Below the pieces are notes generated by a model. It saw only the letters and a program-made list of their open reading frames with translations. It had not been told where the DNA came from and ran no database searches. A DNA stretch of 64,000 bases. Origin: Octopus bimaculoides (lineage: Eukaryota). This document shows, one piece after another, positions 4,061 through 58,075 of this stretch. Within the stretch, counting starts at the first letter, position 1. Each line of letters begins with the position of its first letter. Both the position numbers and the translations under genes were made by a program. Location of the stretch: the NCBI RefSeq assembly GCF_001194135.2, contig NC_068992.1, positions 33,423,715-33,487,714 on the forward strand, written 5' to 3'.

Positions 4061-5436
4061 GAAAATTTAGGCTTGGGACATAATACTTGATTCTGATTGC
4101 AGAGTAGTAAATATTTTACTTAGCATTTCCCATAGACTGAATTTCTTCTCAAACATTTACATATTTGTCATGTTTATACAAGAGTGACATATTCCATATA
4201 CTTAATACATTTTAGCTGCAGAAGCCATAGCTGCTATTAAAGGATTAGACCCTAATTTTCTTTCTGCAATAGAAAAGCATACATAAAGATGATGATGATG
4301 AATATAAAAGAGCAGTCAGCACAAGTAATAACGGCGGAATTGAAGTATGAACCTTTTAACAACAGCAATCTTTACTTAGCTTAAGTGATTCCCATTTGTT
4401 AGCACAAAGTAAAGAAACCACAGAATAGTAGAATATTTTCAACATCATTCACTGGTTATCTGCTGAATGGGATCAAGTGAAAACCTCAATGGAAACACCT
4501 TTGATTCTGAATCGAATGCTCTGTCAAATTCCAGTGAAAGCCCAATTCAAAGCAGAATTTAGGTCACACAATTCCAGTACAAAAAATCTTTAGAATTATT
4601 TCACTTGGTGTACTTCCTATTTCTGTTTGAATACTCAGAATAATATATCCCATCATAAATATTTCTAAAGGTTTTTAACATATGCAAATATACACCCTGT
4701 AGTAAAATGGAATTTATAGAAATCTTTCATTTCAAGATTCCAATATATTAAGTTATACAACATTAAGAAGAAAATCCAAACTAAAAATATAACAAAGACA
4801 TCACCCCTTTCTTAACTCTGTGTAATCTATGGATTTTGCCGGCAAAGACTTTCTCTGGCATACATCAATGTCACATTCATTCCATTTTAAATACAGTTTG
4901 TGTTGGCAAGGAATAATGTATGATTGATTCATGAGAAAGAATGTATGCACATACAAAGATACAATGTTCTATAAGCTTGCATGCATATAAGAAATTAAAC
5001 CAACAGAATTTCTTTCAGTCTAATTGATTGTTTTTCTTTCAAACATTATGCTAACACTAGAATGATGAAAATAGATTATTACAAAACTGATAAAAGTTAG
5101 GAAATTAAAACTATTAACTTCAAACAACACCTCACCTGTTATATTTCTGACTTTCAACCAATTCACAAGATGTGGATATGTATGATTGTAAACAAAAATA
5201 AAAGCTAGAGATATTTCATGTTCAGCTTATTAAAAATTAAATCTATCACGGTTCTGTAGTTGTACATGTTGGAGTGTGACTTGGTCTGATATAGTAGTAT
5301 TAAACTGTAACAAATGCATCATGTTAGTTGAAATAGACATCTAAATACATACACCATAATATTTGCTGTTCACATTTATTGTAATATAGTTAAAATTCAT
5401 TTATCCAAAATGCTTTAGACTGGAAAAAGACAAATT

Positions 5437-5560
5437 AGCTGAGTTGTTACAACATCAGGCGAAATGTTTTGTGCTATTTATTCTGGTTCCCTGCATAATG
5501 AGTTCAAATTCAACTTCAGATTTGTTTTTCATCCTTCCAGGGTTTATAAGGTAGCAGTCA
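5437..5560 (+). repeat. Degenerate family A SINE-like copy
   Basis: AGCTGAGTTGTTAC..GGCGAAATG..GAGTTCAAATTC..TTTTCATCCTTCCAGGG resembles 48-265. Confidence 0.5.
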
Positions 5561-6263
5561 GTTCAGGGGTAATTGGGGTGGAGGAAGAATTTGAGCATTT
5601 GGCCAGGTGCTTTGCAGTGTTTGGTTTGTTTCCTTGCATTTTGAGTTCAAATCCTGCAGTGACCTACTTTACCACCACCACATTGTCTTTGAGTACCTTT
5701 AGTAATGTCGTTCACTCTGTTGCAAGCATTTAGTTTAGATCTCCAATTTGAGAAATCACCCACCTTTCCACTTGTCTGAAGATGGTCATGTGGATGATGT
5801 ATTTTTTTCTAACTAAAAAATTGTTTTGAATTTCAATTGTTTTCAGTTTCAGGATGATGGTATAAGATTTTGGAATAACTGTATACATGTGACTATAAAG
5901 TGGGGCAGCTTGAGGATAGAACCCATGCTTTAAAATGTTATCTATTTACATTCTATAAAACAGATTATATTTTCACTGTGAAGGTTGTTTTATATAAAAT
6001 TGATGCTAGTTCACTTTTGCACTTGTACGAATTCCACTTTGGTTGCAAAACAGATCTACCTATTACATTTATGCACAGTGCAAATGGCATAAGTGACATT
6101 ACTCCCAACAGCAGATGGCTTGATGCGTGGCTAGCGATAGTAGTACATTTCCAAGGAATCTTCTGAACACTTTCTAAAATTCTACATTTCTAGTGCTTCT
6201 TTCCCTTAAAAATAAATTTGGGATTTGGACCTTTCAGATTTCAGAATTTCAGATAAAGTATTA

Positions 6264-8006
6264 CACTGAAGAACATTTTTGAAAAAGTTTTAGTTGTCTT
6301 GTTTTTTACTATTAGTTTTACCTAATTTGATGGTGCTGGGATCAGAAATGCCCTCAGAAATTTTCTTTCACATCAAGTTTTTGTGGAAAAGGAATTAATT
6401 TTTTACCAAAAAATATCAATTTTGCCATTAAATATAATACTGAAATAAGAAAGTGATGCAAACCAAACAGTACTCTTTATTGTTTAACAGATATGTTGCA
6501 CAAAATGTTTAATTACACATCTTAAGACAGATATTTCTGCCAAAATAGAGCTTCAGCTACTCAAGGAGTGAATTTTCTTTCTCTTTGCTGCTTTACAAGT
6601 ATAACTTGCATCATGACAGTCTCTTTCCAGAGACCAGCAGTAGTCAGCCATCATGGTTGTGTTTCACCAACCTTGGTAACTAGTCTCCATTTCTGTGGTA
6701 GAATCTGTCTCCTTCCTCATCACTTATAGCACAATGATTTTCAGGGAAGTAGTTCATATGATTGTGCAGGAAATGCATTTTTACACTCATGTTGCAGCCC
6801 AGTGTTTAAAAACTGGTTACCATGGCCTGCACAAGTTCTTCATAATTTGATGATTCCTGTTTCCCAGGAAATCAGACACAGCTGCAACAAAGCATCCCAT
6901 GCTTCTTTTTCAACATCAGACACGGTCTCCAAAAGCAACTTATCCTACAATAGCCACTTAATCGGTGACCCACCAAACAGACCAAACTTAATTTTCTCTC
7001 AAGACAAAACTGGAAGCTTTCTGATTAAGTATTTGAAATAGTCACTGTCTCAGTGTTTCAACACATGTTTTACACAGTGGGGTGCCCAGGCTTTTTTTTT
7101 GATCCACTTGTTCCATGCCAAAGTAAGTAAAGTAAGCCCTCATCACAAAATCTGTGATTTTGTTTTGCTGCCTAGGTAAAGTGTAACATCTACAAAAATA
7201 TAGCAGAAGACATCAGGGCTGTTTTTGCATTGTTTTCTCTCACAACTGGCCATATTTCTGAAATACATAACATATATTCAAGCTGATTGTCACTTGATAA
7301 AGGCTTTTTTAGAATTGTCAACAGTTATAGAGTAAGCAAATGCAGACTTGTGATGGCAAAGTTCCATAAAGAGCATACATACCATGAAGTTCTTTCAACA
7401 GTTTTTTGACCATGCTTGACAAAAAGTGACCTTGACCCATGTAACCTCACAATTCAAACATTAAGGGCATATTCAAAACACCAATTTTCATAAGAAATAG
7501 TTAAAGATTCAAAAAAACATGTCTCACCTGGTTTGCAATGATAATCACACTTAATCAAGCACAGTATGGGCACTTCTGCAGATAAATTCCACAAACATGA
7601 TATATGTTTGATATGAAGGACCACAGAAATGAGCTTGTTTTTTAAGATGTGATTGAATAAAGGACAATTCTGTCATCATCATGACATTTAAAACTGGTTA
7701 GATTGAAAATAGTGGAAGTTGCTCAAGTTTGATGCTTTTCATTTTGTAGTTGCAGTTACTTTAAATGATGTTGAAAAACTGTTTTCAATGCTATGCCAAA
7801 CTCCATATATGGTTCTGCATTTGATGAAAGCAAATCTATTCTAAAAATTAGCGACAATACTGGAAATGTTGAAAAATGGACATTTCGACCTTGAGAAAAA
7901 TCTTGATGTGATAGAGAGAAATGGATTTCATTTTTGGAAATCAACACCCCAAAATTATGAAAAAACATATCTCCAACACCTGATGACAAAACCATGTTCT
8001 CCAGTT
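6264..8006 (-). mobile_element. Chapaev3-like (CMC superfamily) DNA transposon, internally deleted
   Basis: Termini CACTGAAGAACAT (6264) and ATGTTCTCCAGTT (ends 8006); subterminal imperfect inverted repeat containing CTTGATGTGA; TTA on both flanks (6261-6263, 8007-8009); transposase remnants inside. Confidence 0.85.
6625..7253 (-). pseudogene. Chapaev3-type transposase remnant (N- and C-termini joined by a deletion)
   Basis: ATG at 7253 gives MASCERKQCKNSPDVFCYI..ITDFVMRAY..WAPH, then YFKYL..DFLGN..NYEELV..LGCNMSVKMHFLHNHMNYFPEN..MMADYCWSLERD; stops and frameshifts. Confidence 0.85.
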
Positions 8007-10132: not shown

Positions 10133-12271
10133 ATATACGTTTATGGAAGAGAATAACCTCTTTCCCACTGAACAAAAAGGATGCAGACGAGGCTCATACA
10201 GATGCAAAGATCAGCTCTTAATTAATCGCATGATCCTTGAGAACTGCTATAACAAGCGCAGAAATCTCAGTTCTTCATGGATTGATTATAAAAACGCCTT
10301 TGACAGCATACCACATTCGTGGATTCTGAAATCGCTGGACATATTCAACATTTCTTCTGTGATTTCAAATTTTTTAAAGTATAATATGTCACTATAGAAC
10401 ACAAAGCTCCTTTTATATCATTCTAATGGAGTATTGCACTCAAACAATATTAGCATAAACTGTGGCATTTTCCAAGGTGACTCACCTTCACCACTAATTT
10501 TCTGCATAGTACTAATACCACTCTCAAGTGAACTGAATAAAACAGTGTATGGCTACAAAATTGACAACAGGAAAATAAGCCATCTATTTTATATGGATGA
10601 TTTCAAACTATATGGAAAAGATGATGAAGAGCTTGAAGGACTACTACATACTGTGAAAGGATTCAGTGATGATATCGGGATGGAGTTTGGCCTTGAAAAG
10701 TGTGCCAAAGCCACTTTTAAGAAAGGGAAACTGGTAAAGTCAAGTTCAATAGAATTAGATGTCGAAACAGTAATAAAAGAACTTGAGCAGGAATAAACCT
10801 ATAAATACCCAGGAATAAATAAAGGCATTGGTATCCAGCATGCAAGCATGAAAGAGAAGGTTAGGAAGGAATGTTATAGAAGAGTTCGAGCAGTTCTGAA
10901 GTCTGAGCTGAATGCATATAACAAGGTGTTAGCCATAAATTCCTTAGCAGTCCCAGCTGTTCTTTATACCTTCAATGTGCTTAACTGGAATACCAGTGAA
11001 ATGATGAAAATTGATAGAAAAATCCACAACCTACTGACTTGTAATAAGATGCACCACCCAAAGGCAGACGTGGATCGTTTTACCTTCCCAGAGCTCAGGG
11101 AGGTCAAGGCTTGATCCAGCTTGAACTTACGTACAAAACCACCACAATTGGACTGGCCAAATACCTTGAAACAACCAACGATTGGATGCTGAAACTTGTT
11201 GAAAAACATGAAAGACCAGAGCAAAAAATTCGCTACTGATCTCTTAGATACCTACCAGTTTGATCAGGCTGAAGAAAATGCGCCAACTGCTGCTGCAAAG
11301 AAAATAAAATTAATTGCAAAGACAAAAGCACATGAAAAATTAGCTAGCAGATGGGAACAGAAACCTCTGCATGGCAAGTATGTGGCTCGTAGCAAACAAG
11401 CTGATGTCGACCAGAAACACATGCATCAATGGTTACGAAGTTCAGGGCTAAAAGCAGAGAGTGAAGGCTTCATATTAGCTGCTCAAGACCAAAGCTTATT
11501 AACCCAGAACTACCAAGTTAATGTGAAAAAAATGGAGCTGACCCAAAATGCCGATTCTGTAACGATGCGATTGAAACTATAGACCACATAATCTCAGGGT
11601 GTAGAGTATTAGCACCTGTAGAATATAAAGCAAAACATGACAGAGTCGGCCAATATGTCGGCATTATAAAATCAAAACCGCTGACAAATGATATAAACAC
11701 CATCCTGAAGCTGTGACTGAGGGAGAAAATGTATTGATTCTGCGGGACTTCCCTGTATGTACCGACAAAAGTATAAAAGCTAATAAACCAGATATTATTA
11801 TAAAAGATCAGACAAAGAAGACATGTTTATTAATTGAAATGAGTATTCCTTGCAATCACAATATAGCGGCAAAAGAATTTGACAAGATCAGTAAATATAA
11901 AGACTTGCTAATAGAAATTGAAAAAATGTGGCACCTCAAGGCGACTACCGTACTAGTGATTGTAGGATCTCTAGGAATGATAAAAAAAGGTACTGAAACC
12001 TATTTGAAAATGATACCAGGCCTATCATCCCTAAAGGAAGCACAAAAAATTGTGTTAACTGGAGCGACTCAGTACTGAGAAGAGCCTTATCGCTGTGAAA
12101 ACAACATCCATTCATGAATTTATTTATTTATTAATTTTTCTTAATACATATTTTACCTGTGAATTTGCGTGTGTAAACTGGGAATGCATACAATGAGTTT
12201 CTCTGCCCTAGGTGTACGGAAAACACTCGGCAAGAAATGGAAGAAAATTTGAAGAAAGAAGAAAAACAAAC
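10133..12271 (+). mobile_element. R4/Dong-like RLE LINE, 5'-truncated, followed by (AAT)n
   Basis: EQKGCRRGS, WIDYKNAFDSIPHSW, FQGDSPSPLIF, YMDDFKLY, HPKADVDR, LHGKY, ESEGFILAAQDQ, CCHC remnant, PDIIIKD..IEMSIP..KYKDL; frameshifted. Confidence 0.95.
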
Positions 12272-12485: not shown

Positions 12486-13506
12486 ATGGATGTATCCAAA
12501 GAGAATTTAAGGCACGTAACGCTTTATGAGTACAAAAAACGGAACTCTGCTGCCAAAGCAACTCAAAACATACACTCAGTTTATGAGAAAGAATGCTTGA
12601 AGGAAAGAACTTGCAGATGGTTTGAAAATTCAGAAGTGGAGATTTAAGCCTTGAAAATGAAGATTGAACAGGACGTCCAGTTGAGTTTGATGATAAGATC
12701 CTTGAGGCATTACTTGAAGAAAATCCTGCATTATCAGCTGAAGAATTGGCAATAAAGCTTAGTTCAAACCATACAACTGTTCATCATCTTCAACAACTTG
12801 GAAAGGTTCCTAAACTTGGAAAATGGGTGCCTCATGAATTGTCCGAAAGCAACTGCAAATCCCGAGTTGACATCTGCTCTTCTCTCCATTCTCACAAACT
12901 CATTTCACCCCTTTTGAGTAGACTTGTGACTGGTGATGAAAAATGGATCTTCCATCGAAATGTTATACATCGTAAACAGTGGCTTAGTAAAAGGGGAAAG
13001 CTCAACCACAACCGAGAAGGGAACTTCATTGGAAAAAGGTTCTTCTCTCAATCTGGTGGGATTGCAAAGGAGTAATTCCCTTTGAATTGATACCACCTAA
13101 TACAGCAATCAATGCACAAGTCTACTGTCAGCAATTAGAGCATTTGAACCAAGCTTTGAAGAAACAAAGACCCGCTTTAGTGAATCGAAAAGGAGTGATG
13201 TTTCATCAGGACAACGCGTGACCCCACACTGCAAAGATCACATCACAGAAGATCGAAGAGCTTGGTTGGGAAAAAATTCCTCATCCACCTTATTCTCCCA
13301 ACCTTGTTCCTTCAGACTACCATTTGTTTTGTAGTTTACAGAATCATCTGGGGGACATAACTTCCACAAGATAGGAGGAGGTCGAAATTGATATTTCAGA
13401 GTTCTTTTGCTTTGAAACCAAAAGAGTTTTGCATTGATGGAATTAAAAAGCTTGTAAATAGATGGAAGGAAGTCATAGATAATCAAGATAAGTACACTGA
13501 TGATTA
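12486..13506 (+). pseudogene. Mariner transposase pseudogene
   Basis: MDVSKENLRH..GKWVPHELS..VTGDEKWI..SIWWD..FHQDNA*PH..HPPYSP..SDYHLF; frameshifts and stops. Confidence 0.92.
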
Positions 13507-20916: not shown

Positions 20917-21490
20917 TTCCATTTGGAATCATTAAGAAAGAAGGTACATTAAACCTACAACAATAAAAAAAGATGATAGGTTTAAAGCTCCTAATTTCCA
21001 TTACTGAATTGTCCAACAAACAAGACAATAGAATAATGAATGCAGCATTGATTAAATGTCAAATGTTGGGTACTGTTGTTTATTTAGTGGATGTGAGTTC
21101 GTTTCCTTGGTTACTCAATCTGTACATAATTCTTCAAGCTGACTATGCAAGTGGTATCAGTACAAGAATATATATGGTGTAGGCAATGAAAGGAAAACAA
21201 TATCCTCACTATGGGTTTTAATAAAAGGCTCAGTTTGTATTTAAGAAATGGAGTGTGTGTGCGTATGTCAGTGTGTTTGAGCATGTTTATACGTGTGTGT
21301 GTGTGTAAATTAAAAAGGGTGGCTTATTAGCAATTACAACCTAAAGGCAAAGTTAATAGTGGTAACAAAAGTGACAGAGGGTACTGACTAGCACCATGTT
21401 TACTAAAAATAAAAGTTAAAACAACTCAAAAGCCACAAAAGCACTGTCTTAATGACTAACAAAGGGAGGTAAGTTCCTGGCGAGGTGTAT

Positions 21491-21546
21491 ATTCAGATCG
21501 CAATTTCGGATTTTGATGTAGACCATCTTAATCCTCATCAGTGACT
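21491..21546 (-). ncRNA. Minimal type I hammerhead ribozyme, intact core
   Basis: Minus strand reads AGUCA CUGAUGA GGAUU-AA-GAUG-GUCUA-CAUC-AA-AAUCC GAAA U-UGCG-AUC UGAAU: core motifs, stem II (5+4 bp), short stem III, AUC cleavage triplet, stem I 4/5. Confidence 0.8.
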
Positions 21547-21788
21547 CCTAATGCCTAGGGTTAGACTCAAGTTTTTTTAACTCTTATTTTTAGTAAAAGC
21601 GCTGCTATTGAGTACCCTTTGTCACTTTTGTGACTTCTGCTAACTTTGCCTTTTGGTTCTAATTGCTAATAAACCACCCTTTTTAATATATTGTTTACAC
21701 TTTAACTGTTTCGAAAATCAATACATGCTTTCAACAGTTTTTCTTATAAGACTGACAGAGGTAGTTGAGTTTAACCCTATGCATCAAG

Positions 21789-21844
21789 AGTCGCTGATGA
21801 GGATTAAGATGGTCTGCATCAAAATCCAAAGTTGTGATCTGACT
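21789..21844 (+). ncRNA. Hammerhead ribozyme paralog with mutated core (GAAA>AAAG)
   Basis: AGUCG CUGAUGA GGAUU..AAUCC AAAG UUGUG AUC UGACU; stems I and II intact, G12 and A15.1 changed. Confidence 0.7.
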
Positions 21845-23362
21845 ATATGAGCTGGGAAATTACCTTCCTTTCTTAGTCATTAAGACAGTACTTTTGTGGC
21901 TTTTGAGTTGTTTTAACACTTATTTTTAGCAAAAGTGGTGCTAGTCAGTACCTTCTGTCACTTTTATGACCCCCCTCTCTCTCCCCTTCTACACACACAC
22001 ACACACACACGTACATANNNNNNNNNNNNNNNNNNNNNNNNNNNNNNNNNNNNNNNNNNNNNNNNNNNNNNNNNNNNNNNNNNNNNNNNNNNNNNNNNNN
22101 NNNNNATATATATATATATATACACAAGCATACTAACTCATATTTAAACATACACACATTCACTTACAAATATATGTTCACATCCAAAATATATATGGCT
22201 ATGATATACAAAGATGATAAAAATCAATTTTGAACATACAGGCACACTCATAGAATTGTTCATGCATGCAAACACACACTCACACACACACACAGATTCA
22301 CACACATATAGAAAAACACAGAAATAATCCTACATATATTTATATATATGCGTAAGTAGCAACTATGCACATAAAGATATATGCATACACATATAATGTT
22401 CCTTATTAGTGTTTTGAACACTAGGAAATAGTGTAATAAATTGGCTATAGTCATTATTTAAATTGACTGGTGTGGAAGAAACATCTACTTTCCAGGGGAG
22501 GAATTCAAATTAAGATTAGTCTTTTGAATATATAGAATTCAGTACACTACACTACAGCAGGAAATCCTAAATAGGTTGGCATAATGCCAGATAATTTCAT
22601 TAAAAGAAAATGATAATTCTTTGAGGAAATAGTTTTTCATTACATTAGGAAATTCTTCATTGCAGAAATAAAGAAAAACTATAGAGAACCTAAGAAGTAA
22701 TGATAGAGAGAAATAGAAGGGGAGAAAAGAGCAAGAGAAAAGAAAAGAAGACAAGAGAAAAAGAAAAAAAAGGGAATGAAAGGGGATTTGATGTTATATT
22801 ATTATGGTAGTACTTCAGCTGAACTCACAACTTAGTAAATCACTTGGTCACCATTGCCAGTCACTTTACCACGTATAAGTCCATATTAATTTTGTTGATG
22901 GTCTGTATTGTAGAATTTTGTTTAGCTTTCATTGACTGAGAGGTTAAAATTGACATTATAGATGCTAGTCATTAATATAACACAGATCAATATTCTGCTT
23001 CTTATCATCTTCTTCTGAGAGAGACTTTGAATCATTTGGTGGATACACAAAATTTATATGTAGAATATATGAGCAAATATGAAACAGTTATGAATAAGAA
23101 TATCAGTTTTATTGCTTGCTTCTTCTATTATCATTCCATTCACATTCGGGATGCATAATGGTCCTGTGACTTCCTTTTGTTGAATAATTCTGAGTTTGAA
23201 GAAAACATATTTTCAGTATATTAATGAATGTTCAAGTTCAGTATAGTTGTGAACTAACCAAGAATACCAGATCACATATGAAATATATACTTCTAACAAT
23301 ATTAAAACAAATTCATACAAGTACATTCAGTACAGAAATAACATATAACATGAAATAAGCTA

Positions 23363-23637: not shown

Positions 23638-25817
23638 TCTTTATATATAAGACAGAAACTGACTGTGTGTGTATGTGTGTGTGCGTGTGTGTGTGTGCAA
23701 GTGTGAAGGTTTATAACTCAAGTTCCACCTAACTGACTTGACTGAAATTTCTATTTGGTATGTTCCAAGGTATGTTTTAGTCATAACAACTGCTTGCATC
23801 AATGTTCGGTTTTCACAAAAATTCGATTGATAATTATCGATTTTTTTAAAAAGTCATTTGATTTTGATCAAACTTGACATACCTATGCATTCTTACCCAA
23901 GGTTTTTTGTTTAATTATTATTTTTTACAAATTCCATTTCGTTTGAGTACAACACAGGAAAAACTGACTCAAAAAATGCCTTTAAGGCAGGCTATAGTGC
24001 CGGAACCATTGAGCTGATTTAAACCAAACTCGCTAAACGAATGCATTTTCACCCAACAAATCTTATGTCATGGTTCATTTCATTAAATTGCACTTTGTTT
24101 GAGCACAATTCAACAAACTCACATTCGAACAAAATGCCTTTGTTGAGGTAGTTCCTGATTTGTTTTTCTCAGAACACTGACCCCATTCCTTCTCCGATGC
24201 ATAAACAATTAATCTCCACCATGGTGTGCACACACATTGTGACCCCACATGACCTCAAAATAGCCACTGCCAATAACAGTAAACATCCGGCACTGAGGCT
24301 TTCCATTGCAATAAATGAAAGCAATTTCTATGTGTAGCATGAGATAGCTAAAGCAATAACAGCCTCTGCACTGCGCAAGCTACTGGTAAGTACTTACTAC
24401 TTCCTTCATCCATTTCACTAGCAGTTGTAACCGGCGTTGCATGGGTCTTAATAAATTACCATGAAACTGCGGAAACATGAGGCCTTACACTTGAGAAAGG
24501 ACGGTTAAGGCAATAACCTTGGTAACCACTTGAATTAAATCAATACCCAAGCTGCCTTTCAAAAATTTATATTTTTGCACTGTTTACGGTTTCCGTGTAC
24601 AAGTACTTTCAGGTGAAGCTGGGCCAAACCACTGAATCACCAAACTGGTTTGATTGAAATTTCAGATATGCATTAGGTATGTTCCGGGACATGGTTTTAG
24701 TCATAACAACTGCTTCAATAAATGTTTGGTTTCCGCAAAAACTCGGTTGTAAAAATTTGATGAAGCATGTTGTTGAGGCAACCATCCTATCTGGATGCGG
24801 GAAAGGTGAGGATGTATTCATTCCCAGGATTCCCCTTACTCCCTCGGGAACAGACATACCTTTCGCCTTCAGAAGACTGCAATTCCAGCTTCACCATGTC
24901 TGTCAACAAGTCCCAGGGCCAGACTCTTTCTGTGGCCGGACTTCTCTTGGAAGAGCCTTGCTTTTCCCATGGCCAGCTGTATGTTGCATGCTCCAGAGTC
25001 CGCAGTAGAAACAGACTGTTCACATTAACACATCAGGGGAAGACAAGAACCAATGTCTAGAACAAACTGCTACATATTTGCCAGGGCTGAAGTGGGTATG
25101 TTATCGCCATGCATGCATATAACGGGGTTCACTCAAATACTTTTACTATTTTTCTCATATCAGACGCAAGCATCAGAAAAGGTCGCCTGCCTCTTGACAC
25201 TCTGTGGGTCTATGGAAGGCGTTCATGTGGTGCTCCTACGATGGCAAAGAGGTGACAATTTGATGCAGTTGCACGATAATAATGCGAAGAACCAATGTTG
25301 TCAAACAGCTGCTACAAACGGACCAGTGGAAAGGCAGGTTAGGTATCGCATATTTGAGGACATTTCTGCTGCCTTCTATATGGTCGATTACCTCAAGCAT
25401 GTTTATTCATAACATTAAAGTGACCAATTCAATGGAAACGATACCAATTTACAAAACACATGGCAGCTATGTGTTGCATGAATCTCTTGAGGGCAACATT
25501 CCAACTGTTGACCATTTACCACCTTCGACTGGGAGCAATCTAGTGCTCAAACGGTTCCCTTTTAGGAAACAGTGAAGTTGTTCAACTCATTCTCTTCCTA
25601 TATGTTTATCTGTGTGCTTCATTCTATGGCTTCATTCACAAGTGTATGGTTCTAATCTGTGCTGGGCTGAGGAGTAAGGTGTTGAAATCAGAAGAGAATT
25701 GCACTAACACGGTAGCCGAGGTAGGGCTCAAAAAGTTTTCTCATGTGTAAGGCGTCATTTTTCTGCAGTTGAATGGTAATTTATTAAGACCCGTGCAACG
25801 CCGGGTACTACTGCTAG
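23638..25817 (+). mobile_element. Non-autonomous rearranged Helitron
   Basis: A|TC 5' end (TCTTTATATATAAG followed by (GT)n); 3' hairpin ACCCG-TGCAACGC-CGGGT then CTAG|T at 25814-25817; helicase fragment inside. Confidence 0.85.
24740..25075 (+). pseudogene. Helitron PIF1-type helicase C-terminal fragment
   Basis: VEATILSGCGKGEDVFIPRIPL..PFAFRRLQF, then after a frameshift NKSQGQTL..EPCFSHGQLYVACSRV. Confidence 0.92.
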
Positions 25818-26344: not shown

Positions 26345-27800
26345 ATACAGAGACTGGTTTGATGAAAATGATGCTGAAGTTCAGCAACTATTGTTTGTAA
26401 TGCACCATATCTACAATGTATTGTTGCACAGAGGACTTTCGGCTGTGCATCGAAATCTAGCACTTGCTTACTATAACAGTGTAAAATCACTACTGCAGCG
26501 ATCTCTCAGCAAGATGCAGAACACTAGTTGGGAGGATCTTGCTCATGATGTTCAAGCTGCTGCTGATGCAAATCACTGCAAGAAGCTTTACCATCTTACG
26601 AAGCAGGTTTATGGGCCTAAGAGGGTCTGCATCAGCTCCTTTGCATTCCAAGGACACTTCTGCTCAATTCACTAAATCAACACAAATCACAGGTCGCTGG
26701 ATTGAACACTTCTCTGAACTTTTGAACCATGAGTCATTTGTGGATAAAACAGTGATTGAAATTATGCAACAGAAGCCTATCATTGGTTCCTTAAATTCCA
26801 TGCACTCAGTAGATGAGGTAATGACAGCAATAAGTAAACTGAATCTTGGCAGGACACCTAGAAGGGATAAAGTTTGTGCTGAGGTTTTGTGATTTGGTGG
26901 TGATTACATCATACAGTCTCTTCATGAACTTATTAGTGTAGTCTGGAGGGATAGTGCAATGCCTAAGGATTGGAAGGATGCAATCATTCTTCCTCTTTAT
27001 AAAGGAAAAGGAGCCAGAATAACTTGTGGTAACCACAGAGGTATTGCTCTACTATCAACTGCTAGCAAGGTTCTGGCAAATATTCTTCTTACCTGCCTGA
27101 ACGAGTGTCTCGTAAATGGTGTCCTAACTGAATCCCAATGTGGCTTCTGATCTGGTAGAGAGACAATGGATATGATTTCCACAGCAAAACAGATGCAGGA
27201 GAGGTGCTATGAGCAGAATGTGGATCTAGTTATTCATTGATCTAACCAAGGCCTTTGATACTGTGAATATGGCCTTGCTATGGAAAATATTTGGCAAACT
27301 TGGATGTCCAGATCACTTTGTATCTATAATTAAATCATTTCATGATAGGATGGAGGTTTGGGTCAATGTTGGTCGTGGCACGATAGGACACATTCCTGTA
27401 GAGAATGGTGTCAAGCAGGGTGACATCCTTGCCCCAACTCTCTTTTCTTTGTACTTTGCTGCTGCTTTTACACATACCTTTGCTAACGTTAGCTCTCTGG
27501 GAATATATGTCAGGTGTCATTCTTCTGGCTGCCTCTTTAATCTGTGCCAATTTGCTGCCAATTCAAAAGTTTTTCAAAAGTCTCTTATTCATGACCTCCT
27601 TTATGTAGATGACTGTGACTAAGTCACTCATACAGTGGATGACGTGCAAATACTTATGAATTGCATTTCTGCTTCTTGCAAAGCATTAGCCTGAACAAGA
27701 CTGTTCTAATGTTTCAGGCTGCACCAGGAAATCCAAATGTGGAACCAACTATTTTGGCTGAAGGAACAATACTGAAAGTGGTAGAGGAGTTTGTCTATTA
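26345..27800 (+). mobile_element. RTE-BovB-like LINE ORF2 fragment
   Basis: DWFDEND, RWIEHFSELLN, PKDWKDAIILPLYKGKG..NHRGIALLS, ESQCGF, TKAFDTV, GVKQGDILAPTLFSLYF, LLYVDDC; stops and frameshifts. Confidence 0.92.
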
Positions 27801-30460: not shown

Positions 30461-30734
30461 AATCTGTGGTTGGAATGTAAAAACATTTTAATGTATTACT
30501 ATGCACTTTTCCACCTATCACATTTTTCTTATGATCATTGTGTATATTCCTGGGATGATCACATTACTGTCCATAATATCCAGTGACATCTATGGATATA
30601 TCCCAGGAATACAAACCATGATGATTGTAAGAAACATGTGATTTATGGCAAATGCACATTGCAATGCATTAAAATATTTATAAATTCCATCCATGAATTA
30701 TTATCATTATTGTCAGTTTTACTACATTTACATT

Positions 30735-30771
<37 letters not shown>

Positions 30772-30777
<6 letters not shown>

Positions 30778-31998
30778 AAGGAGTAGGTAGTAACTCTATA
30801 AGATGTACCCAGTGCAATCTATGGACATATAAGAGGTGCAGCAATATCAAAGGAAGGCTAACTAGGAAGTTAGCTTTTGTATGTGGTAGATGTTCAGGTG
30901 CAATAAACATTGTAAACAAACAGGAAACAACTTCTGTCTCATTCCAGGGAGAAAAACTAGAGGTAGTTGATAGCTTCCGCTATCTGGGTGACCAAGTTAG
31001 TAGTGGGGGTGGGTGCGCTGAAAGTGTAGCTGCTAGAATAAGAATAGCCTGGGCAAAGTTCAGAGAGCCCTTACCTGTGCTGGCAACAAAGGGACTCTCA
31101 CTCAGAGTAAAAGGCAGACTGTATGACGCATGTGTACGAACAGCCATGCTACGTGGCAGTGAAACATGGGCTGTGACTGCTGAGGACATGCGTAAGCTCG
31201 CAAGGAATGAAGCCAGAATGCTCCAATGGATGTGTAATGTCAGTGTGCATACCCGACAGAGTGTAAGTATCTTGAGAGAAAAGCTGAACATAAGAAGCAT
31301 CAGATGTGGTGTGCAAGAGAGACGATTGTGCTAGTATGGACATGTGGTGAGAATGGACGAGGATAGCTGAGCGAAAAAGTGCCACAACCTAACAGTTGAG
31401 GGAACTCGTGGAAGAGGTAGGCCCAGGAAGACCTGGGCTGAGGTGGTGAGGCAAGACCTTCAAACATTGGGCCTCACCAAGGTGATGACTTCTGACCGGG
31501 ACCTTTGGAAATGTGCTGTGCTTGAGAAGACCCGGCAAGCCAAGTGAGACCTAAATCCAAGGCCTCTGCCAGGGGTGTAGCCAGCCCACTCATGCGTACC
31601 TTTCCTACGTTGGACACAAAACTCAGCCTGCGAAGATTTATTGGGGCAAGCGAATAGCGAAATCGGGATAGCACCTGTGCCCAGCGTCGCCTTCCTGGCA
31701 CTTGTGCCCGTAACATGTGTAAGGAGTTTTGAGTGAGATCGTTACTAGTGCCCCTGGACTGGCTCTTGTGCAGGTGGCACATAAAATACACCATTTTGAG
31801 CGTGGCCTTTATGCGGGTGACACGTAAAAGCACCCACTACACTCTCTGAGTGGTTGCCGTTAGGAAGGGCTTCCATCTGTAGAAACTCTGCCAAATCAGA
31901 TTGGAGGCTGGTGTTGCCATCGAGTTTCACCAGTCCTCAGTCAAATCGTCCAACCCATGCTAGCATGGAAAGCGGACGTTAAACGATCATGATGATGA
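30772..31998 (+). mobile_element. RTE LINE, 5'-truncated, relatively young
   Basis: Long open ORF2 segment RKGVGSNSIRCTQC..LEVVDSFRYLG..ARIRIAWAKFRE..GRLYDACVRTAML..GRPRKTW; 3'UTR and (GAT)n tail. Confidence 0.95.
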
Positions 31999-42907: not shown

Positions 42908-43060
42908 TCATCATCATCGTTTAACGTCCATTTTCCATGGATGCATGGGTAAGGCGGTTGACAGGAACCAGCCAGGTAGAAAAACTACTCTAGACTACTA
43001 TGTCTGATTTGGCAGGGATTTTATGGCTGAATGCCCTTCCTAACACCAGCCACTACACTT
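42908..43060 (-). repeat. RTE-type tail fragment, tail-to-tail with the preceding copy
   Basis: CATCATCATCGTTTAACGTCCA..GCCCTTCCTAACACCAGCCACT. Confidence 0.75.
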
Positions 43061-43134
43061 TGACAATATATAAATACATGGCAGTATACAATGTACGCAN
43101 NNNNNNNNNATATATATATATATATATATATAAG

Positions 43135-43420
43135 GTATGGATTTCTCAATTACTTTCCATTTAATCACATGTGGTGTTTCATTATCTTTTGAAGTCCATA
43201 TGTAGCTAGCCAACTGAGTAGTTTTACTTTTGTCCCTATGTTGGGAGGAGGCTATGTGATTAACATAGCGATTTTTAAATTCTCCTTCACTTAATCCAAT
43301 ATAGGTCTTCCCCTCAGTTGTATTATCATTTAGGGTTGCAGTAACTTCTGCCTCATATATGGTCAAGTGGACAGGATACTGACCATCGTTGGTCAAGTGG
43401 ACAGGATCCTGGGTTGTGAC
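43135..43420 (-). pseudogene. Penelope-like GIY-YIG endonuclease fragment
   Basis: IYEAEV..KTYIGLSEGEFKNRYVNH..TQLASYIWTSKDNETPHVIKWKVIEKSIPY. Confidence 0.85.
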
Positions 43421-43589
43421 AGTTGCAATTGGATTCAGGTTCTTGGTATTGACCACATGTAATGATATTCTTCATACTGGGGCAGCAGCTACATGATAAT
43501 TTCCTAGAATGCCTATTAAATATTTTCCTGTATCTGTGAGTTGCTGGAAAGTGTTTGACTAAGAGTGACAGGAATCTTTTACCAATGTT

Positions 43590-51470: not shown

Positions 51471-52884
51471 CATCATCATCATCATCATCGTTTAACGTCC
51501 GCTTTCCATGCTAGCATGGGTTGGACGATTTGACTGAGGACTGGTGAAACCGGATGGCAACACCAGGCTCCAGTCTGATTTGGCAGAGTTTCTACAGCTG
51601 GATGCCCTTCCTAACGCCAACCACTCAGAGAGTGTAGTGGGTGCTTTTACGTGTCACCCGCACGAAAACGGCCACGCTCGAAATGGTGTCTTTTATGTGC
51701 CNNNNNNNNNNNNNNNNNNNNNNNNNNNNNNNNNNNNNNNNNNNNNNNNNNNNNNNNNNNNNNNNNNNNNNNNNNNNNNNNNNNNNNNNNNNNNNNNNNN
51801 NNNNNNNNNNNNNNNNNNNNNNNNNNNNNNNNNNNNNNNNNNNNNNNNNNNNNNNNNNNNNNNNNNNNNNNNNNNNNNNNNNNNNNNNNNNNNNNNNNNN
51901 NNNNNNNNNNNNNNNNNNNNNNNNNNNNNNNNNNNNNNNNNNNNNNNNNNNNNNNNNNNNNNNNNNNNNNNNNNNNNNNNNNNNNNNNNNNNNNNNNNNN
52001 NNNNNNNNNNNNNNNNNNNNNNNNNNNNNNNNNNNNNNNNNNNNNNNNNNNNNNNNNNNNNNNNNNNNNNNNNNNNNNNNNNNNNNNNNNNNNNNNNNNN
52101 NNNNNNNNNNNNNNNNNNNNNNNNNNNNNNNNNNNNNNNNNNNNNNNNNNNNNNNNNNNNNNNNNNNNNNNNNNNNNNNNNNNNNNNNNNNNNNNNNNNN
52201 NNNNNNNNNNNNNNNNNNNNNNNNNNNNNNNNNNNNNNNNNNNNNNNNNNNNNNNNNNNNNNNNNNNNNNNNNNNNNNNNNNNNNNNNNNNNNNNNNNNN
52301 NNNNNNNNNNNNNNNNNNNNNNNNNNNNNNNNNNNNNNNNNNNNNNNNNNNNNNNNNNNNNNNNNNNNNNNNNNNNNNNNNNNNNNNNNNNNNNNNNNNN
52401 NNNNNNNNNNNNNNNNNNNNNNNNNNNNNNNNNNNNNNNNNNNNNNNNNNNNNNNNNNNNNNNNNNNNNNNNNNNNNNNNNNNNNNNNNNNNNNNNNNNN
52501 NNNNNNNNNNNNNNNNNNNNNNNNNNNNNNNNCCATAGCTTGCACCGGGTACATCTTATAGAGTTACTACCTACTCCTTTTCTACATACTGAGCAGGGCC
52601 ATCTACCTGAAGGGGTTTGTGTTTTATCTACCTTCCTACTTATTAGGATTTTGGTTTTAGCTAGGTTGACTCTAAGGCCCTTCAATTCTAGACCTTGCTT
52701 CCACACCTGAAACTTCTCCTCTAGTTCTGATAGTGACTCCGCAATCAGGGCAAGGTCATCAGCATAGAGGAGCTCCCAGGGGCAACCTGTCTTGAACTCC
52801 TCTGTGATTGCCTGGAGGACTATGGTAAATAATAGGGGGCTGAGGACGGAACCTTGGTGGACCCCTACCTCTACCCGGAATTCA
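51471..52884 (-). mobile_element. RTE LINE (gapped) inserted in the Penelope-like element
   Basis: (CAT)n tail and 3'UTR; after the gap VGVHQGSVLSPLLF..CPWELLYADDL..GLRVNLAKTKIL..WPCSVCRKG. Confidence 0.93.
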
Positions 52885-54929: not shown

Positions 54930-56690
54930 TCATCATCATCATCATCATTGTTTAACGTCAGCTTTCCATGCTAGCATGGGTTGGATGATTTGACTGAGGA
55001 CTGGCAAAACAGATGGCTGCACCAGGCTCCAATCTGATATGGTAGAGTTTGTACACCTAGATGCCCTTCCTAATGCCAACCACTTCAAGAGTGTAGTGGG
55101 TGCTTTTACGTGCCACCGGCACAAGGGCCAATCACGCGGTACTGGCAACGACCATGCTCAAATGGTGTTTTTACATGCCACCTGCACAGGAGTCAGTCCA
55201 GCGGCACTGGCAATGACCTCGCTTGAATGTTTTGTTCACATGCCACCGGCACAAGTGCCAGTAAGGTGATGCTGTTAATGATCACGCTCAAATGCTGCTT
55301 TTTACGTGCCACCGGCAGTGATCCTGCTCAGATGGTGCTGTTAGCGCTCCACTGGCATGGGTGCCAGTCATCGAATTTGGTTCAGTTACGATTTCACTTG
55401 CCCCAACAGGTTTTCGCAAGCAGGGATTTGTGTTCAAAGAAGGAAAGGTACACATAAGTGGGCTGGCTACACCCCTGATAAAGGCCACGTGTTATGGTCT
55501 CACTTGTCTTGCCAGGTCTTCTCACACACAACATATTTCCAAAGGTCTTGGTCACTAATCATTGCTTCGATGAGGCCTAATATTCAAGGTTCGTGCTTTA
55601 CCACCTCATCCCAGGTCTTCCTGGGTCTAACTCTTCCACAGGTACCCACAACTGCTAGGCTGTAGAAGTTTTTCACATAGCTGTCCTCATCCATTCTCGC
55701 CAAATGACCATACCAGTGCAATCGTCTCTCTTGCACACCACAACTGATGCTTCTGACATTACACATCCAGCGGAGCATACTAGCTTCATTCCTTGTGAAC
55801 TTCCACATGTCCTCAGCAGTCACGGCCCATATTTTATTGCCATGTAGCATGGCTGTTCATACACACATGTCATACAGTCTGCCTTTCATTCTGAGCGAGA
55901 GGCCCTTTGTCACCAGCAGAGGTAAGAGATCTCTGAACTTTGCCCAGCTTATTCTTATTCTAGCAACTACACTTTCAGTGCACCCTTCCCTGCTACTGAC
56001 TTGGTCACCTAGATAATGGAAGCTATCAACTACTTCTAGTTTTCCTCCCTGGAATGTAGCAGAAGTTGTTCTCTGCACATTTTCAGTGTGTATTGCTCCT
56101 GAGCACCTGCCACATACAAAAACTATCTTGCAAGTTAGCCTTCCTTTGATGTTGCTGCACCTCTTATGTGTCCATAGTTTGCACTGGGTACATCGTATAC
56201 AGTTTCTACCTACGCCTTTTCTACAAATAGAGCAGGGCCATCTACTAGAAGGGGTTTGTGGTTTGTCTACCTTTCTACTTATTAGGACTTTGGTTTCAGC
56301 TAGATTGACTCAAAGGCCCTTCGATTCTAATCCTTGGTTCCACACCTGAAACTTCTCCTCTAGTTCTGATATTGATTCAGCAATTAGAGCAAGTTCATCA
56401 GCATAGAGGAGCTTCCAGGGGCATCCTGTCTTGAATTCCTGTGTTATTGCCAGGAGAACTATGATAAATAGGAGGAGGCTGAGGACTGAACCTTGGTGCA
56501 CCCCTACCTCTACTCGGAATTCACTGTATTCATTGCCAACCCTCACCTTACTAATGGCATCCCTGTACATGGCTCGCACAGGTCTCACTAACCATTCATC
56601 TATCCCTAGTTTCTTCATTGACCAGCAAATAAGAAATTGGGGGACCCTGTCAAAAGCTTTCTCCATGTCAACGGAAGCCAGGTACACCAA
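54927..56690 (-). mobile_element. RTE LINE, 5'-truncated within RT
   Basis: YLASVDMEKAFDRVP..VGVHQGSVLSLLLF..LLYADELALIA..WPCSICRKG..GRPRKTWDEVVKH; 3'UTR and (CAT)n tail. Confidence 0.95.
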
Positions 56691-58075
56691 CCATGCACTC
56701 CATTTATTCAACTCTTCCTCCTTCCCGCCTGGTCCCTCTAAACTTCTCTTCACTCTCGATATACAGAGCCTTTACACGGTGATCCCTCACCACAAGAGGC
56801 TGTGTGCACTCCAGCATTTCTTTGACCTTCGACCCAACCTCCAACCTGACACATCCACACTCGTTCATCTGGCTTAACTTGTCCTCTCACTCAGCTGGTT
56901 CTTGTTCGCTGGTGATTTTTACCTTGTCAGAAGTGGACATGGGAATGAGAATGGGCCCCAACTATGTGAACCTGTTTATTGGCTATGTTGAGGCCCATAT
57001 ATTCTCAGGTTTCACTGGTCCCAATATACTGGTCCATTATATTGACGATTGTATCGGTACGACCTCACTCTCCTGTTAACATCTAGACTCCTTCCTCTTT
57101 TATGTCAAACCTTTCCATCCTGCCCTCCACTTCTCCTGCACTATCACTGACACTTCTGTCTCCTCTTTTGACATTTCGATCAGCATTCATCACTCCACTC
57201 TCACCACCTCCATCCACTACAAACACACAGACTCACACTCATACTTCAACTTCTCCTCCTCCCATCCTAAACACACCAAGCTCTCCATCCCCTATTCCCA
57301 ATTCCTTTGTCTACGCAGGCTCTGCAATGACAACCGTGACTTTGAGACTCAGTCTCAACTCATGGCTCACTACTTCATCCTACATGGATATCCCCTCACC
57401 ACTATCCACACCGGCCTTGCCAGAACACACTCCATGGACCATGCATCTGCTCTCCCCCCCCCCCGCACTTGTCCTGCCATCTCTCATCTCCCATTTACCT
57501 TCTCCTACCACCCTACCACCCTACCTCTCCAACACACCATTCTCCGAGCCTTCCAGTGACTCCAGTCTGACCCCTCCACTTTGCACATGTTCCATAACTG
57601 ACCCCTCTCTTCTTTCAAACGAGACCTCTTGGTCCACAGCTTCTTCCCTAACCCAACCTCCCAAGCCAGCTCATTCCCCTTCTCCTGCCCATACTGCGCA
57701 CTTGCCCTTACCTCTCCAACACCACCCTCCTCACCAGCACCCATCATCAGCCCTATCATTTCACCGACTCCTTATCCTGCACTTCTAACAATGTCATTTA
57801 CTGCATCTCCTGCTCTCTCTGTCCTTCTCTATACATCAGGCAAACAGGACATCACTTGGCTTACTGGTTTGCGGAACACCTCCGAGACATCCGACTTGGC
57901 AATGACAACGCGGCCTCATGCCATTTCTGCTCTACCGGTCACTCTTTGCAACTCCTGTCCATGTTCGGATTGTCCTTGCACAGGGGCCATATGGACTCCC
58001 GTCTTCGCCGCGAACAGGTATTAATCTTCTCTCTTCACTCCTTTGCACCACATGGGCTCAACTCTCCTCCCCCTT
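56691..58075 (+). mobile_element. Penelope-like retroelement (RT plus GIY-YIG), 5'-truncated
   Basis: TNHAL..LLFTLDIQSLYTVIPH, MGMRMGPNYVNLF, YIDDC, HYKHTDSHSYFNFSSSHPKHTKLSIPYSQF, NNVIYCISC..LYIRQTG..FAEHLRDIR..RREQVLIFSL..PHGLN. Confidence 0.92.

Follow-up and report, generated by a model that had tools for sequence, protein, structure and literature searches.

The window analysed here, a 64-kb stretch of octopus DNA, contains a non-coding repeat locus at 21306-21971, in which three copies of one sequence are joined in inverted and partly tandem order. The repeated sequence is divided below into segments h, Y and Z, and two hammerhead motifs (HHR-A and HHR-B) are embedded in it. The features of the locus, together with a remnant of a Penelope-like element (PLE) found elsewhere in the window, are the following.

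21293-21306, no strand: (TG)n microsatellite that directly borders the inverted copy A at its outer (3') end; it reads (CA)n in the sense of copy A
21306-21570, minus strand: copy A, an inverted, 5'-truncated copy with segments h-Y-Z, 265 nt (inverted repeats, alignment, nhmmer)
21491-21546, minus strand: HHR-A, type I hammerhead with an intact core (direct sequence reading and descriptor match)
21541-21535, minus strand: CUGAUGA of HHR-A
21534-21508, minus strand: helix II of HHR-A, two stems of 5 bp (including G10.1-C11.1) and 4 bp, separated by a 2x2 internal loop
21507-21504, minus strand: GAAA of HHR-A
21504-21497, minus strand: helix III of HHR-A, AUUGCGAU, 8 nt
21496, minus strand: C17 of HHR-A
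21570-21690, plus strand: copy C, segment Z, the 3'-terminal 121 nt of the unit (repeats, alignment, nhmmer)
21691-21764, plus strand: segment q, 74 nt, single copy (alignment)
21765-21971, plus strand: copy B, segments h-Y-Z', in which Z ends after 65 nt and a CT-rich stretch follows (repeats, alignment)
21789-21844, plus strand: HHR-B, a hammerhead paralog with an inactivated core (sequence, fold, alignment)
21972-22017, no strand: CT-rich stretch at the right outer end, including (AC)n at 21991-22010
56743-58065, plus strand: frameshifted PLE remnant, not part of the hammerhead locus (homologues and visible motifs)

The 3' end of copy A, ...CCACCCUUUUUAAUUUA, points to the left flank, and the opposite end of this copy meets copy C head-to-head at 21570; copy C in turn continues directly into segment q. 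The initial annotation had described an inverted partial copy abutting the unit head-to-head and a segment of about 60 bp recurring 336 nt apart. Both were recovered, the former as the junction between copies A and C, the latter as a direct repeat of 65 nt (21570-21634 and 21906-21970) with 85% identity. Three pairs of inverted arms link the copies: 21361-21477/21855-21971 (90%), 21488-21570/21765-21847 (88%) and 21306-21426/21570-21690 (85%). The copies are about 13-15% apart, and their pairwise distances are nearly equal (0.131, 0.15 and 0.154), which fits a single event. (CA)n in sense orientation adjoins both outer 3' ends of the locus. On the right the locus is deleted beside an assembly gap (22018-22105), and its boundary there is uncertain because the gap follows at once.

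Segment q has no similarity elsewhere in the rest of the window by blastn or nhmmer, and it may represent the 5' portion of a 336-nt unit, or else further 3' UTR of a longer element. The unit has a GC content of 35% and is non-coding: no open reading frame of at least 90 aa is present at the locus, and the longest stop-to-stop frame (68 aa, across q and HHR-B) had no relative among 1.84 billion proteins (phmmer, 0 matches), in agreement with the earlier statement that no protein-coding remnant is recognisable. As a proxy for family size this phmmer null is uninformative, because spurious ORFs need not be called. All three copies terminate inside the final 336 nt and are free of ORF-derived sequence.

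HHR-A reads, on the minus strand, 5'-AGUCA CUGAUGA GGAUU-AA-GAUG-GUCUA-CAUC-AA-AAUCC GAAA UUGCGAU C UGAAUA-3'. The type I core was tested as C3-U4-G5-A6-N7-G8-A9, G12-A13-A14, A15.1-U16.1 and an H17 that is not G, and HHR-A has every element of it (CUGAUGA, GAAA, A15.1/U16.1 and C17). Helix II is closed by the G10.1-C11.1 pair and is recovered with its 5+4 bp in the MFE fold. On direct reading A9 is followed by 10.1 with no unpaired nucleotide in between, CUGAUGA abutting GGAUU and AAUCC abutting GAAA. Helix I has only 3 contiguous bp (UGA/UCA). Helix III is self-complementary when two G.U pairs are allowed, so that 15.2-16.2/loop 3 is palindromic, and it can be drawn either as a 2-bp hairpin with a 4-nt loop or as an 8-bp intermolecular duplex; the 8-bp intermolecular helix forms in the homodimer cofold, at -5.9 kcal/mol. 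This self-complementarity implies action as a dimer. A type I hammerhead with an intact core had been placed at 21546-21491 of the minus strand in the initial annotation, and direct reading of the sequence bears this out; the cleavage site predicted there, 21496|21495, agrees with the position of C17. The sequence thus supports the assignment of HHR-A to hammerheads of the metazoan type I/PLE kind.

A descriptor search of the whole 64-kb window returned HHR-A as its single match. With helix II of at least 5, helix I of at least 3 and helix III of at least 2, the chance rate is 0.018 per window in order-1 Markov simulations with the composition of the window, and when a fully self-complementary helix III of at least 6 nt is added, 3 of 9360 simulated windows match (3e-4 per window). 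A search with the Rfam hammerhead models, as suggested in the initial annotation, was negative: the models, RF00163 included, gave no match in the whole window at gathering score, and none when a 1-kb and an 81-nt piece were scanned permissively (E<=10 for the 81 nt). This result says little, because two textbook min-HHRs of PLEs that served as controls (L002 and L016) escape the same models as well. Other sub-threshold Rfam matches were discarded; MIR7533, at 51 bits with a gathering score of 230, is simply the long inverted repeat, and RAGATH-12 (22 bits against 75) and the snoRNA-like matches are noise.

The second motif, HHR-B, lies about 245 bp from HHR-A on the opposite strand, and the locus contains no two HHRs of the same polarity. 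Its CUGAUGA is at 21794-21800 and its C17 at 21839. As had been described, this paralog has a better helix I (5 bp, against 3 bp in HHR-A) and a mutated GAAA: AAAG stands at 21828-21831, which corresponds to G12A and A15.1G and breaks the core. HHR-A and HHR-B differ at 6 of 57 aligned HHR columns, matching the background rate. Divergence is 0.105 in the HHR columns versus 0.136 elsewhere; the hammerhead has changed as fast as the rest of the copies and therefore shows no sign of constraint.

The PLE remnant nearest to the locus, 35 kb away, comprises the C-terminal half of an RT (LLFTLDIQSLYTVIPH ... HYIDDCIG ...) and a CCHH/GIY-YIG endonuclease (NVIYCISC..YIRQTGHH..FAEHLRDI..APHGLN). Pfam gave no match on its decayed pieces; it is identified by homologues that carry RVT_1, PF26215 and GIY-YIG (PF01541) and cover 100% of the query, and by the GIY-YIG/CCHH motifs that are still visible. 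The matches of the protein search are at most 55% identical and belong to ENA contigs, corals and fishes, with no octopus among them. Penelope remnants had been reported for this window, and the one at 56743-58065 on the plus strand confirms them. The hammerhead unit has no nucleotide similarity to this remnant (blastn, nhmmer). Moreover, an ORF for RT plus GIY-YIG is absent from 21306-21971, so the element, if mobilised by PLEs, is non-autonomous or truncated.

PLE insertions are strongly 5'-truncated, partly tandem and often inverted, with a bias towards microsatellites (PMC8557442). The locus combines a partial tandem with an inverted copy truncated at its 5' end, and it adjoins microsatellite sequence; the identification of this layout with the published PLE integration signature (PMC8557442) is supported. 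The PLE relative L016 has the same layout, with arms at 4554-5805/6449-7440 and a min-HHR in each, and the octopus genome is rich in PLEs (PMC13282606, PMC8967140). The earlier proposal that Penelope machinery mobilised the element therefore stands in part: the PLE-type layout, the microsatellite flanks and the RT/EN remnant argue for it, whereas the dissimilarity between unit and remnant argues against it.

Hammerheads of PLEs and other metazoan sequences typically have a long helix II with a G10.1-C11.1 pair, whereas helix I is short and helix III palindromic; pairs of HHRs on opposite strands, 100-700 bp from each other, have also been reported (PMC4209133). HHR-A shares with the min-HHRs of PLE pseudo-LTRs (Cervera and de la Pena 2014, PMC4209133) the predicted type I topology, the CUGAUGA...GAAA core, G10.1-C11.1, the length of helix II (here 5+4 bp), the shortness of helix I and the self-complementarity of helix III; the last four count as support because the descriptor did not force them. 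Like those min-HHRs, the locus has two opposite-strand copies a few hundred bp apart and a PLE-style insertion by a microsatellite. Cleavage of PLE min-HHRs as dimers is reviewed in PMC6765202. Unlike them, HHR-A lacks the unpaired nucleotide between A9 and 10.1, its helix III is 8 nt long, whereas that of L002 and L016 is a 4-nt ACGU, and no RT/EN ORF adjoins the locus.

Metazoan non-LTR retrozymes offer a second comparison (Cervera and de la Pena 2020, PMC7229834; PMC7761336). The unit at the locus is, like them, non-coding, about 300 bp long and low in GC; it carries a single type I HHR whose palindromic helix III is weak, it is partly repeated head-to-tail, and PLEs, from which retrozymes have been derived (bioRxiv 10.64898/2026.07.22.740005), co-occur in the genome. 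In contrast to a head-to-tail retrozyme, which would present at least a dimer of a 170-400-bp unit with HHRs of the same polarity, the locus has 1.2 plus-strand units, one HHR per strand and no array, TRF having found no tandem array there. The predicted fold of the unit is also not strongly self-paired: the composite circular monomer folds at -69.9 kcal/mol, and 12 of 200 shuffles fold equally well. This value (z = -1.56) is unexceptional, and a rod-like circular RNA fold is unsupported.

Of the 336-nt retrozyme monomer proposed in the initial annotation, the 336-nt spacing of the repeat is retained; against it stand the single Z-to-q junction, the extent of only 1.2 units and the missing same-strand HHR pair. 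This last point matters because the dimeric mode of cleavage and the excision of a monomer both require such a pair. A 336-nt monomer is not established, because a longer PLE that left three 3' ends, each truncated on its 5' side, would give the same picture. Searches with blastn and nhmmer recovered no further copy of the unit elsewhere in the window, nor in 21 kb of O. vulgaris, and an exact 22-mer had no match in JGI metagenomes or IMG/VR. A family of such elements is assumed rather than shown, since no second locus was found in the sequences searched. In the literature searched, we found no description of hammerheads or retrozymes in octopus repeats. There are 235 matches to Hammerhead_1 (RF00163) in Architeuthis dux (PMC6962438), and hammerhead motifs are thus already common in cephalopod DNA; unlike these, HHR-A scores with no Rfam hammerhead model and is one of those that annotation of this kind overlooks.

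The locus is a real relic of a PLE-type, hammerhead-bearing element, at most a putative retrozyme, and an ordinary example of a well-known kind. With a probability of roughly 55%, we interpret it as the product of one composite retrotransposition of a short non-coding hammerhead element dependent on PLE machinery, namely a retrozyme-like, non-autonomous PLE derivative. In the source element, a type I hammerhead with a short self-complementary helix III would cut multimeric transcripts as a dimer after C17, giving unit-length RNA that was possibly circularised. The template would be an RNA with the unit q-h-Y-Z, about 336 nt long and with its HHR cleavage site at position 149/150 of the unit. 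A PLE RT/GIY-YIG endonuclease would copy this RNA into DNA at a (CA)n microsatellite, and template switching of the kind typical of PLEs would then leave three pieces: an inverted 5'-truncated one (21306-21570, minus strand), a partial direct one (21570-21690) and a longer direct one (21691-21971, plus strand). The element is old, dead and inert at this locus: its copies have diverged to the extent given above, HHR-B lacks G12 and A15.1, and HHR-A, although its core is intact, is left with a helix I of 3 bp and without a partner on its own strand. In a read-through transcript both hammerheads would be buried in a hairpin of roughly 210 bp.

Among the alternatives, the one to be taken most seriously, although we judge it rather unlikely, dispenses with a separate 336-nt element. 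According to it the pieces, which measure 265, 121 and at least 281-336 nt, are 5'-truncated fragments of the 3'-terminal (pLTR) region of an ordinary autonomous PLE several kb long, joined in inverted and tandem order in one insertion, and the hammerhead is the min-type ribozyme of that PLE. The heavy 5' truncation, partial tandems and frequent inversion of PLE insertions (PMC8557442) agree with this, as does the fact that genomic min-HHRs are mostly single or in opposite-strand pairs, which have been ascribed to truncated PLEs (PMC4209133). In L016 the HHR follows the stop of the ORF by 93 nt and is some 117 nt away from the element end, so a fragment of up to 340 nt could be free of coding sequence; furthermore, there is just one junction to define the 336-nt spacing. 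However, all three truncations would have to fall inside the last ~340 nt of an element of ~3 kb, the unit does not resemble the only PLE remnant available, and the helix III of HHR-A (2 bp and a 4-nt loop, or an 8-nt palindrome), with no bulge at A9/10.1, is nearer to the retrozyme type than to the ACGU type of L002 and L016.

It is improbable, in our estimate, that the motif was never a ribozyme and arose by chance in an unrelated repeat, either a foldback or MITE-type DNA element with 121-bp TIRs (21306-21426/21570-21690) or a SINE. Copies A and C alone do resemble a 385-bp element with 121-bp inverted termini, a relaxed descriptor gives ~0.1 chance matches per window, the motif was picked from a scan of many windows, and Rfam is silent. 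In addition, a degenerate pattern of core and helix II had 11 metagenome matches, all in unrelated bacterial sequences; a core plus a 5-bp helix II thus arises by chance in bacterial coding DNA. Against this reading stand the strict chance rate of 3e-4 per window and copy B, whose homology runs on over h-Y-Z in the opposite orientation while keeping tandem register with copy C, an arrangement for which a simple MITE cannot account. A target-site duplication is not evident at 21306/21690 on reading the sequence, a tRNA-like part, as expected of a SINE, was looked for and not found, and each difference between HHR-A and HHR-B within the motif leaves at least one copy in an HHR-compatible state. 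Still less credible is an assembly artefact, in which repeat copies from different places were stitched together in a short-read scaffold by the gap. The N gap does begin 47 nt past the locus, the window has six gaps, and PLE structures often break short-read assemblies (PMC8557442). On the other hand, arms that differ by 13-15% cannot be one sequence assembled twice, 21306-22017 is free of N, the three pairwise distances are near-equal, and the layout is exactly as the biology predicts.

Hammerheads in PLEs and in animal retrozymes are already well documented, retrozymes have been described as non-autonomous PLE derivatives (PMC7761336; bioRxiv 10.64898/2026.07.22.740005), and their mobilisation by PLEs has been proposed with phylogenetic support in vertebrates; a single decayed octopus locus therefore adds little alone. 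Standard Rfam annotation misses the class of HHR-A, both in this window and in two clear PLE controls, and cephalopod hammerhead counts based on Rfam are consequently underestimates. The unit also provides a concrete query for a possible octopus retrozyme family. That octopus genomes hold an unannotated hammerhead retrozyme family of ~336 nt, which makes small circular RNAs and whose PLE integration signature is preserved at this locus, is a tentative and doubtful proposition. If such a family exists, the locus shows an insertion with a PLE-specific inverted and tandem layout, which is mechanistic rather than correlative evidence. It would then be direct structural evidence, in a mollusc, of PLE machinery inserting retrozymes, and some of the octopus repeats in the large 'unclassified SINE/unknown' category would be PLE-dependent.

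Repeat finding and three-way alignment show that the 666 bp of the locus consist of one sequence, present in three partial copies. Its segments are q (74 nt), h (83 nt, containing the hammerhead ribozyme, HHR), Y (about 60 nt) and Z (121 nt), distributed as follows:

21306-21570, minus strand: copy A, h-Y-Z
21570-21690, plus strand: copy C, Z
21691-21971, plus strand: copy B, q-h-Y and the first 65 nt of Z

Copy C is continuous with copy B, giving the plus-strand order Z|q-h-Y-Z' and therefore the 336-nt spacing noted in the initial annotation (a 65-nt repeat at 21570 and 21906, 85% identity); copy A, 5'-truncated and on the minus strand, meets the plus-strand copies head-to-head at 21570. Both the recurrence and the inverted partial copy are confirmed by repeats and alignment. 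No ORF of at least 90 aa is present at the locus, in agreement with the reported absence of a protein-coding remnant; no tRNA-like part was found, TRF detected no tandem array, and GC content is 35%.

The minus-strand motif, HHR-A (21546-21491), reads directly as 5'-AGUCA-CUGAUGA-GGAUU-AA-GAUG-GUCUA-CAUC-AA-AAUCC-GAAA-UUGCGAU-C-UGAAUA-3', and its layout is that of a type I hammerhead with CUGAUGA and GAAA, as had been claimed:

21541-21535, minus strand: 5' core box CUGAUGA
21507-21504, minus strand: GAAA
21504-21497, minus strand: helix III, 8 nt, AUUGCGAU
21496, minus strand: C17

Helix III is self-complementary provided that two G.U pairs are counted; helix II, with a G10.1-C11.1 closing pair, begins with 5 bp and continues beyond a 2x2 internal loop with 4 bp capped by a 5-nt loop, and helix I consists of just three contiguous pairs (UGA/UCA). 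From the position of C17 cleavage is predicted at 21496|21495, exactly where the initial annotation had placed it. In a predicted homodimer cofold an 8-bp intermolecular helix III forms, which would be consistent with the dimer cleavage mode reviewed in PMC6765202. The paralog, HHR-B (21789-21844, plus strand), does have the better stem I and mutated GAAA ascribed to it: helix I has 5 bp, more than in HHR-A, CUGAUGA (21794-21800) and helix II are kept, and AAAG replaces GAAA at 21828-21831 (G12A, A15.1G), so that the core is dead.

A descriptor composed of CUGANGA, helix II, GAAA, helix III closed by A15.1-U16.1, H17 (not G) and helix I matched once on the two strands of the 64-kb window, at HHR-A. 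In sequences simulated from the window's dinucleotide transition frequencies (an order-1 Markov model rather than exact shuffling), chance matches to the relaxed descriptor number about 0.10 per window, falling to 0.018 when helix II has at least 5 bp and to 3e-4 (3 of 9360 simulated windows) when helix III is also fully self-complementary over at least 6 nt. As even this last rate predicts about a dozen chance matches per 2.7-Gb genome, the motif by itself is strong but not conclusive evidence, and the context must decide.

The Infernal search proposed in the initial annotation did not recover the motif: Rfam hammerhead families gave no match at gathering scores in the entire window, nor at E<=10 over 1 kb or over 81 nt of the locus. 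For calibration, the same permissive scan was run on two textbook hammerheads of Penelope-like elements (PLEs), both minimal type I HHRs on ENA contigs:

11915-11875, minus strand of L002 (ERZ25067889): acuuCUGAAGAuGUAUGCcggaaGCAUACGAAACGUCaagu
7290-7323, plus strand of L016 (ERZ25073789): gcuCUGACGAaGGGCuaacGCUCGAAACGUCagc

Both were equally missed, and the Rfam negative therefore carries little weight for this HHR subclass. In the L002 motif A9 is followed by a U that stays unpaired, helix II has 6 bp and helix III is ACGU; the motif adjoins a PLE ORF 55% identical to the window's PLE remnant. A sub-threshold MIR7533 match (51 bits vs a cut-off of 230) was rejected, as it reflects the long inverted repeat.

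PLE insertions are heavily 5'-truncated, with partial tandems and a microsatellite bias including (CA)n (PMC8557442, Craig et al.), and often have an inverted 5'-truncated copy on the 5' side (PMC8557442). At the locus, the outer end of copy A touches a (TG)n run (21293-21306) that reads as (CA)n in the sense of that copy, and the right end is followed by a CT-rich stretch, (AC)n at 21991-22010 and an assembly gap (22018-22105); with 31 AC/GT runs across the window, chance is an unlikely cause of two abutments in sense orientation. The hammerheads of PLEs, characterized by long helix II, short helix I, G10.1-C11.1 and palindromic helix III, are mostly single or in opposite-strand pairs 100-700 bp apart (PMC4209133, Cervera and de la Pena). 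L016 (4554-7440) offers a clean positive control for the head-to-head architecture: its PLE, 43% identical to the window remnant, forms an inverted pair whose arms (4554-5805 and 6449-7440) are PLE 3' portions, 93-99% complementary, each with an identical minimal HHR (7290-7323, plus; 4704-4671, minus) that follows the ORF stop by 93 nt and leaves about 117 nt to the outer end. The locus has the same layout, but without any ORF. HHR-A, in contrast to both controls, has no unpaired base after A9, and its helix III is of 8 nt rather than 4 nt; in these features its closer resemblance is to the 'canonical' type I HHRs found in animal retrozymes, short non-coding HHR-bearing retroelements.

Animal non-LTR retrozymes are low-GC tandem repeats of about 170-400 bp; each unit contains a single type I HHR, and the elements are expressed in the form of circular RNAs (PMC7229834, PMC7761336). 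A 2026 preprint argues that such elements derive from PLEs and are non-autonomous (10.64898/2026.07.22.740005). Of the 336-nt retrozyme-like monomer in the initial annotation, the size and the non-coding nature hold, and the GC content of the locus also fits a retrozyme; the tandem organization does not, as the locus contains 1.2 units with one HHR per strand. The period rests on a single Z-to-q junction, and because this junction was set where copy A homology ends, it does not count as separate evidence of where a unit begins or ends. A multi-kb PLE that left three 3' ends, each 5'-truncated (265, 121 and about 336 nt), with no short element involved, would give the same picture; against this, all three copies end within the last ~340 nt without ORF-derived sequence and helix III of HHR-A is of retrozyme type, and for these reasons we lean, by a small margin, towards a short element. 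A viroid-like rod is unsupported by the predicted fold of a composite circular monomer (-69.9 kcal/mol, z = -1.56; 12 of 200 shuffles as stable). Segment q ends on its 3' side with AAGACUGACAGAGG, the complement of which, CCUCUGUCACUUUU, lies within Z (21748-21761 vs 21367-21380), and a small Z hairpin, GUCAC-NNNN-GUGAC (21624-21636), is the source of a sub-threshold RAGATH-12 match; such segments may pair over long range in the unit RNA, or the matches may be coincidental.

Decayed mobile elements occupy almost the whole window, including the Penelope remnants previously reported:

56743-58065, plus strand: PLE remnant, frameshifted, C-terminal half of RT and CCHH/GIY-YIG endonuclease
43040-43456, minus strand: ORF with a GIY-YIG-like stretch (TYIGLSEGEFKNRYVNH...)
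30693-31334, plus strand, and 51693-52706, minus strand: two copies of the C-terminal part of a LINE, including a PHD-type zinc finger (GVGSNSIRCT.C.LW...)
10434-10796 and 27263-27622, plus strand, and 56310-56753, minus strand: three RVT_1 fragments of non-LTR type, one adjoining the 5' side of the PLE remnant
24767-25060, plus strand: PIF1/Helitron-like helicase tail, identified by eye, no Pfam match
12746-13075, plus strand: mariner-like fragment, identified by eye, no Pfam match

Homologues of the PLE remnant bear RVT_1, PF26215 and GIY-YIG, some spanning the whole query; Pfam matched none of the window's decayed PLE pieces. No nucleotide similarity was found between this remnant and the HHR unit, and the descriptor found no HHR downstream of it, where an assembly gap (58247-58367) lies roughly at the expected hammerhead place, ~100-200 nt past the ORF; its non-coding tail stops at an (AC)n run (58970-58986). 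The ORF at 43040-43456, also without Pfam match, may be what remains of a further GIY-YIG element, e.g. an N-terminal-EN PLE of Naiad type. The two LINE copies are up to 92% identical to predicted proteins of Octopus bimaculoides and O. vulgaris, which marks the host as an octopus, and several repeat families are common to the window and a stretch (L003) of O. vulgaris chromosome OX597814.1 (76-87% nucleotide identity). At 16012-15972 on the minus strand of L003, tcaCUGAAGAgACCauugcaaGGUGAAAugacaugauc ugg weakly resembles a hammerhead; the match, in which helix II has 3 bp, sits beside LINE sequence, is absent from the homologous repeats of the window and is probably due to chance.

Further copies of the unit were found neither in the rest of the window nor in 21 kb of O. 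vulgaris; an exact 22-mer had no match in JGI metagenomes or IMG/VR, the 11 matches of a degenerate pattern were all unrelated bacterial sequences, and a 68-aa open frame across q and HHR-B, used as a protein-space proxy for the family, retrieved no relative. The p-distances (A-B 0.131, A-C 0.15, B-C 0.154) are star-like, as expected if a single event gave all three copies, and the O. vulgaris repeat calibration (JC 0.065 for about 18 My, 0.09 for about 25 My; PMC13282606) would place it very roughly 20-25 My ago. Divergence is 0.105 in HHR columns vs 0.136 in the remaining ones, and nothing in these values indicates constraint on the ribozyme after insertion; neutral decay would leave just such a pair, with one core intact and the other dead.

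A function at this locus is unlikely, because HHR-B is dead, HHR-A, though its core is kept, forms a weak helix I and lacks a dimer partner on its own strand, and in any read-through transcript the 86-90% complementary arms, 21361-21570 and 21765-21971, would pair and sequester both motifs in a long hairpin. PLEs are abundant in octopus (PMC8967140, PMC13282606), and cephalopod DNA hammerheads have already been reported, with 235 Rfam Hammerhead_1 matches in the giant squid (PMC6962438); the cephalopod repeat surveys and retrozyme papers examined make no mention of octopus hammerhead elements. The locus genuinely preserves what is left of a hammerhead-bearing element of PLE type, for which membership in a retrozyme family is plausible but unproven, and it is best filed among already known element types, of which it is a new individual member.
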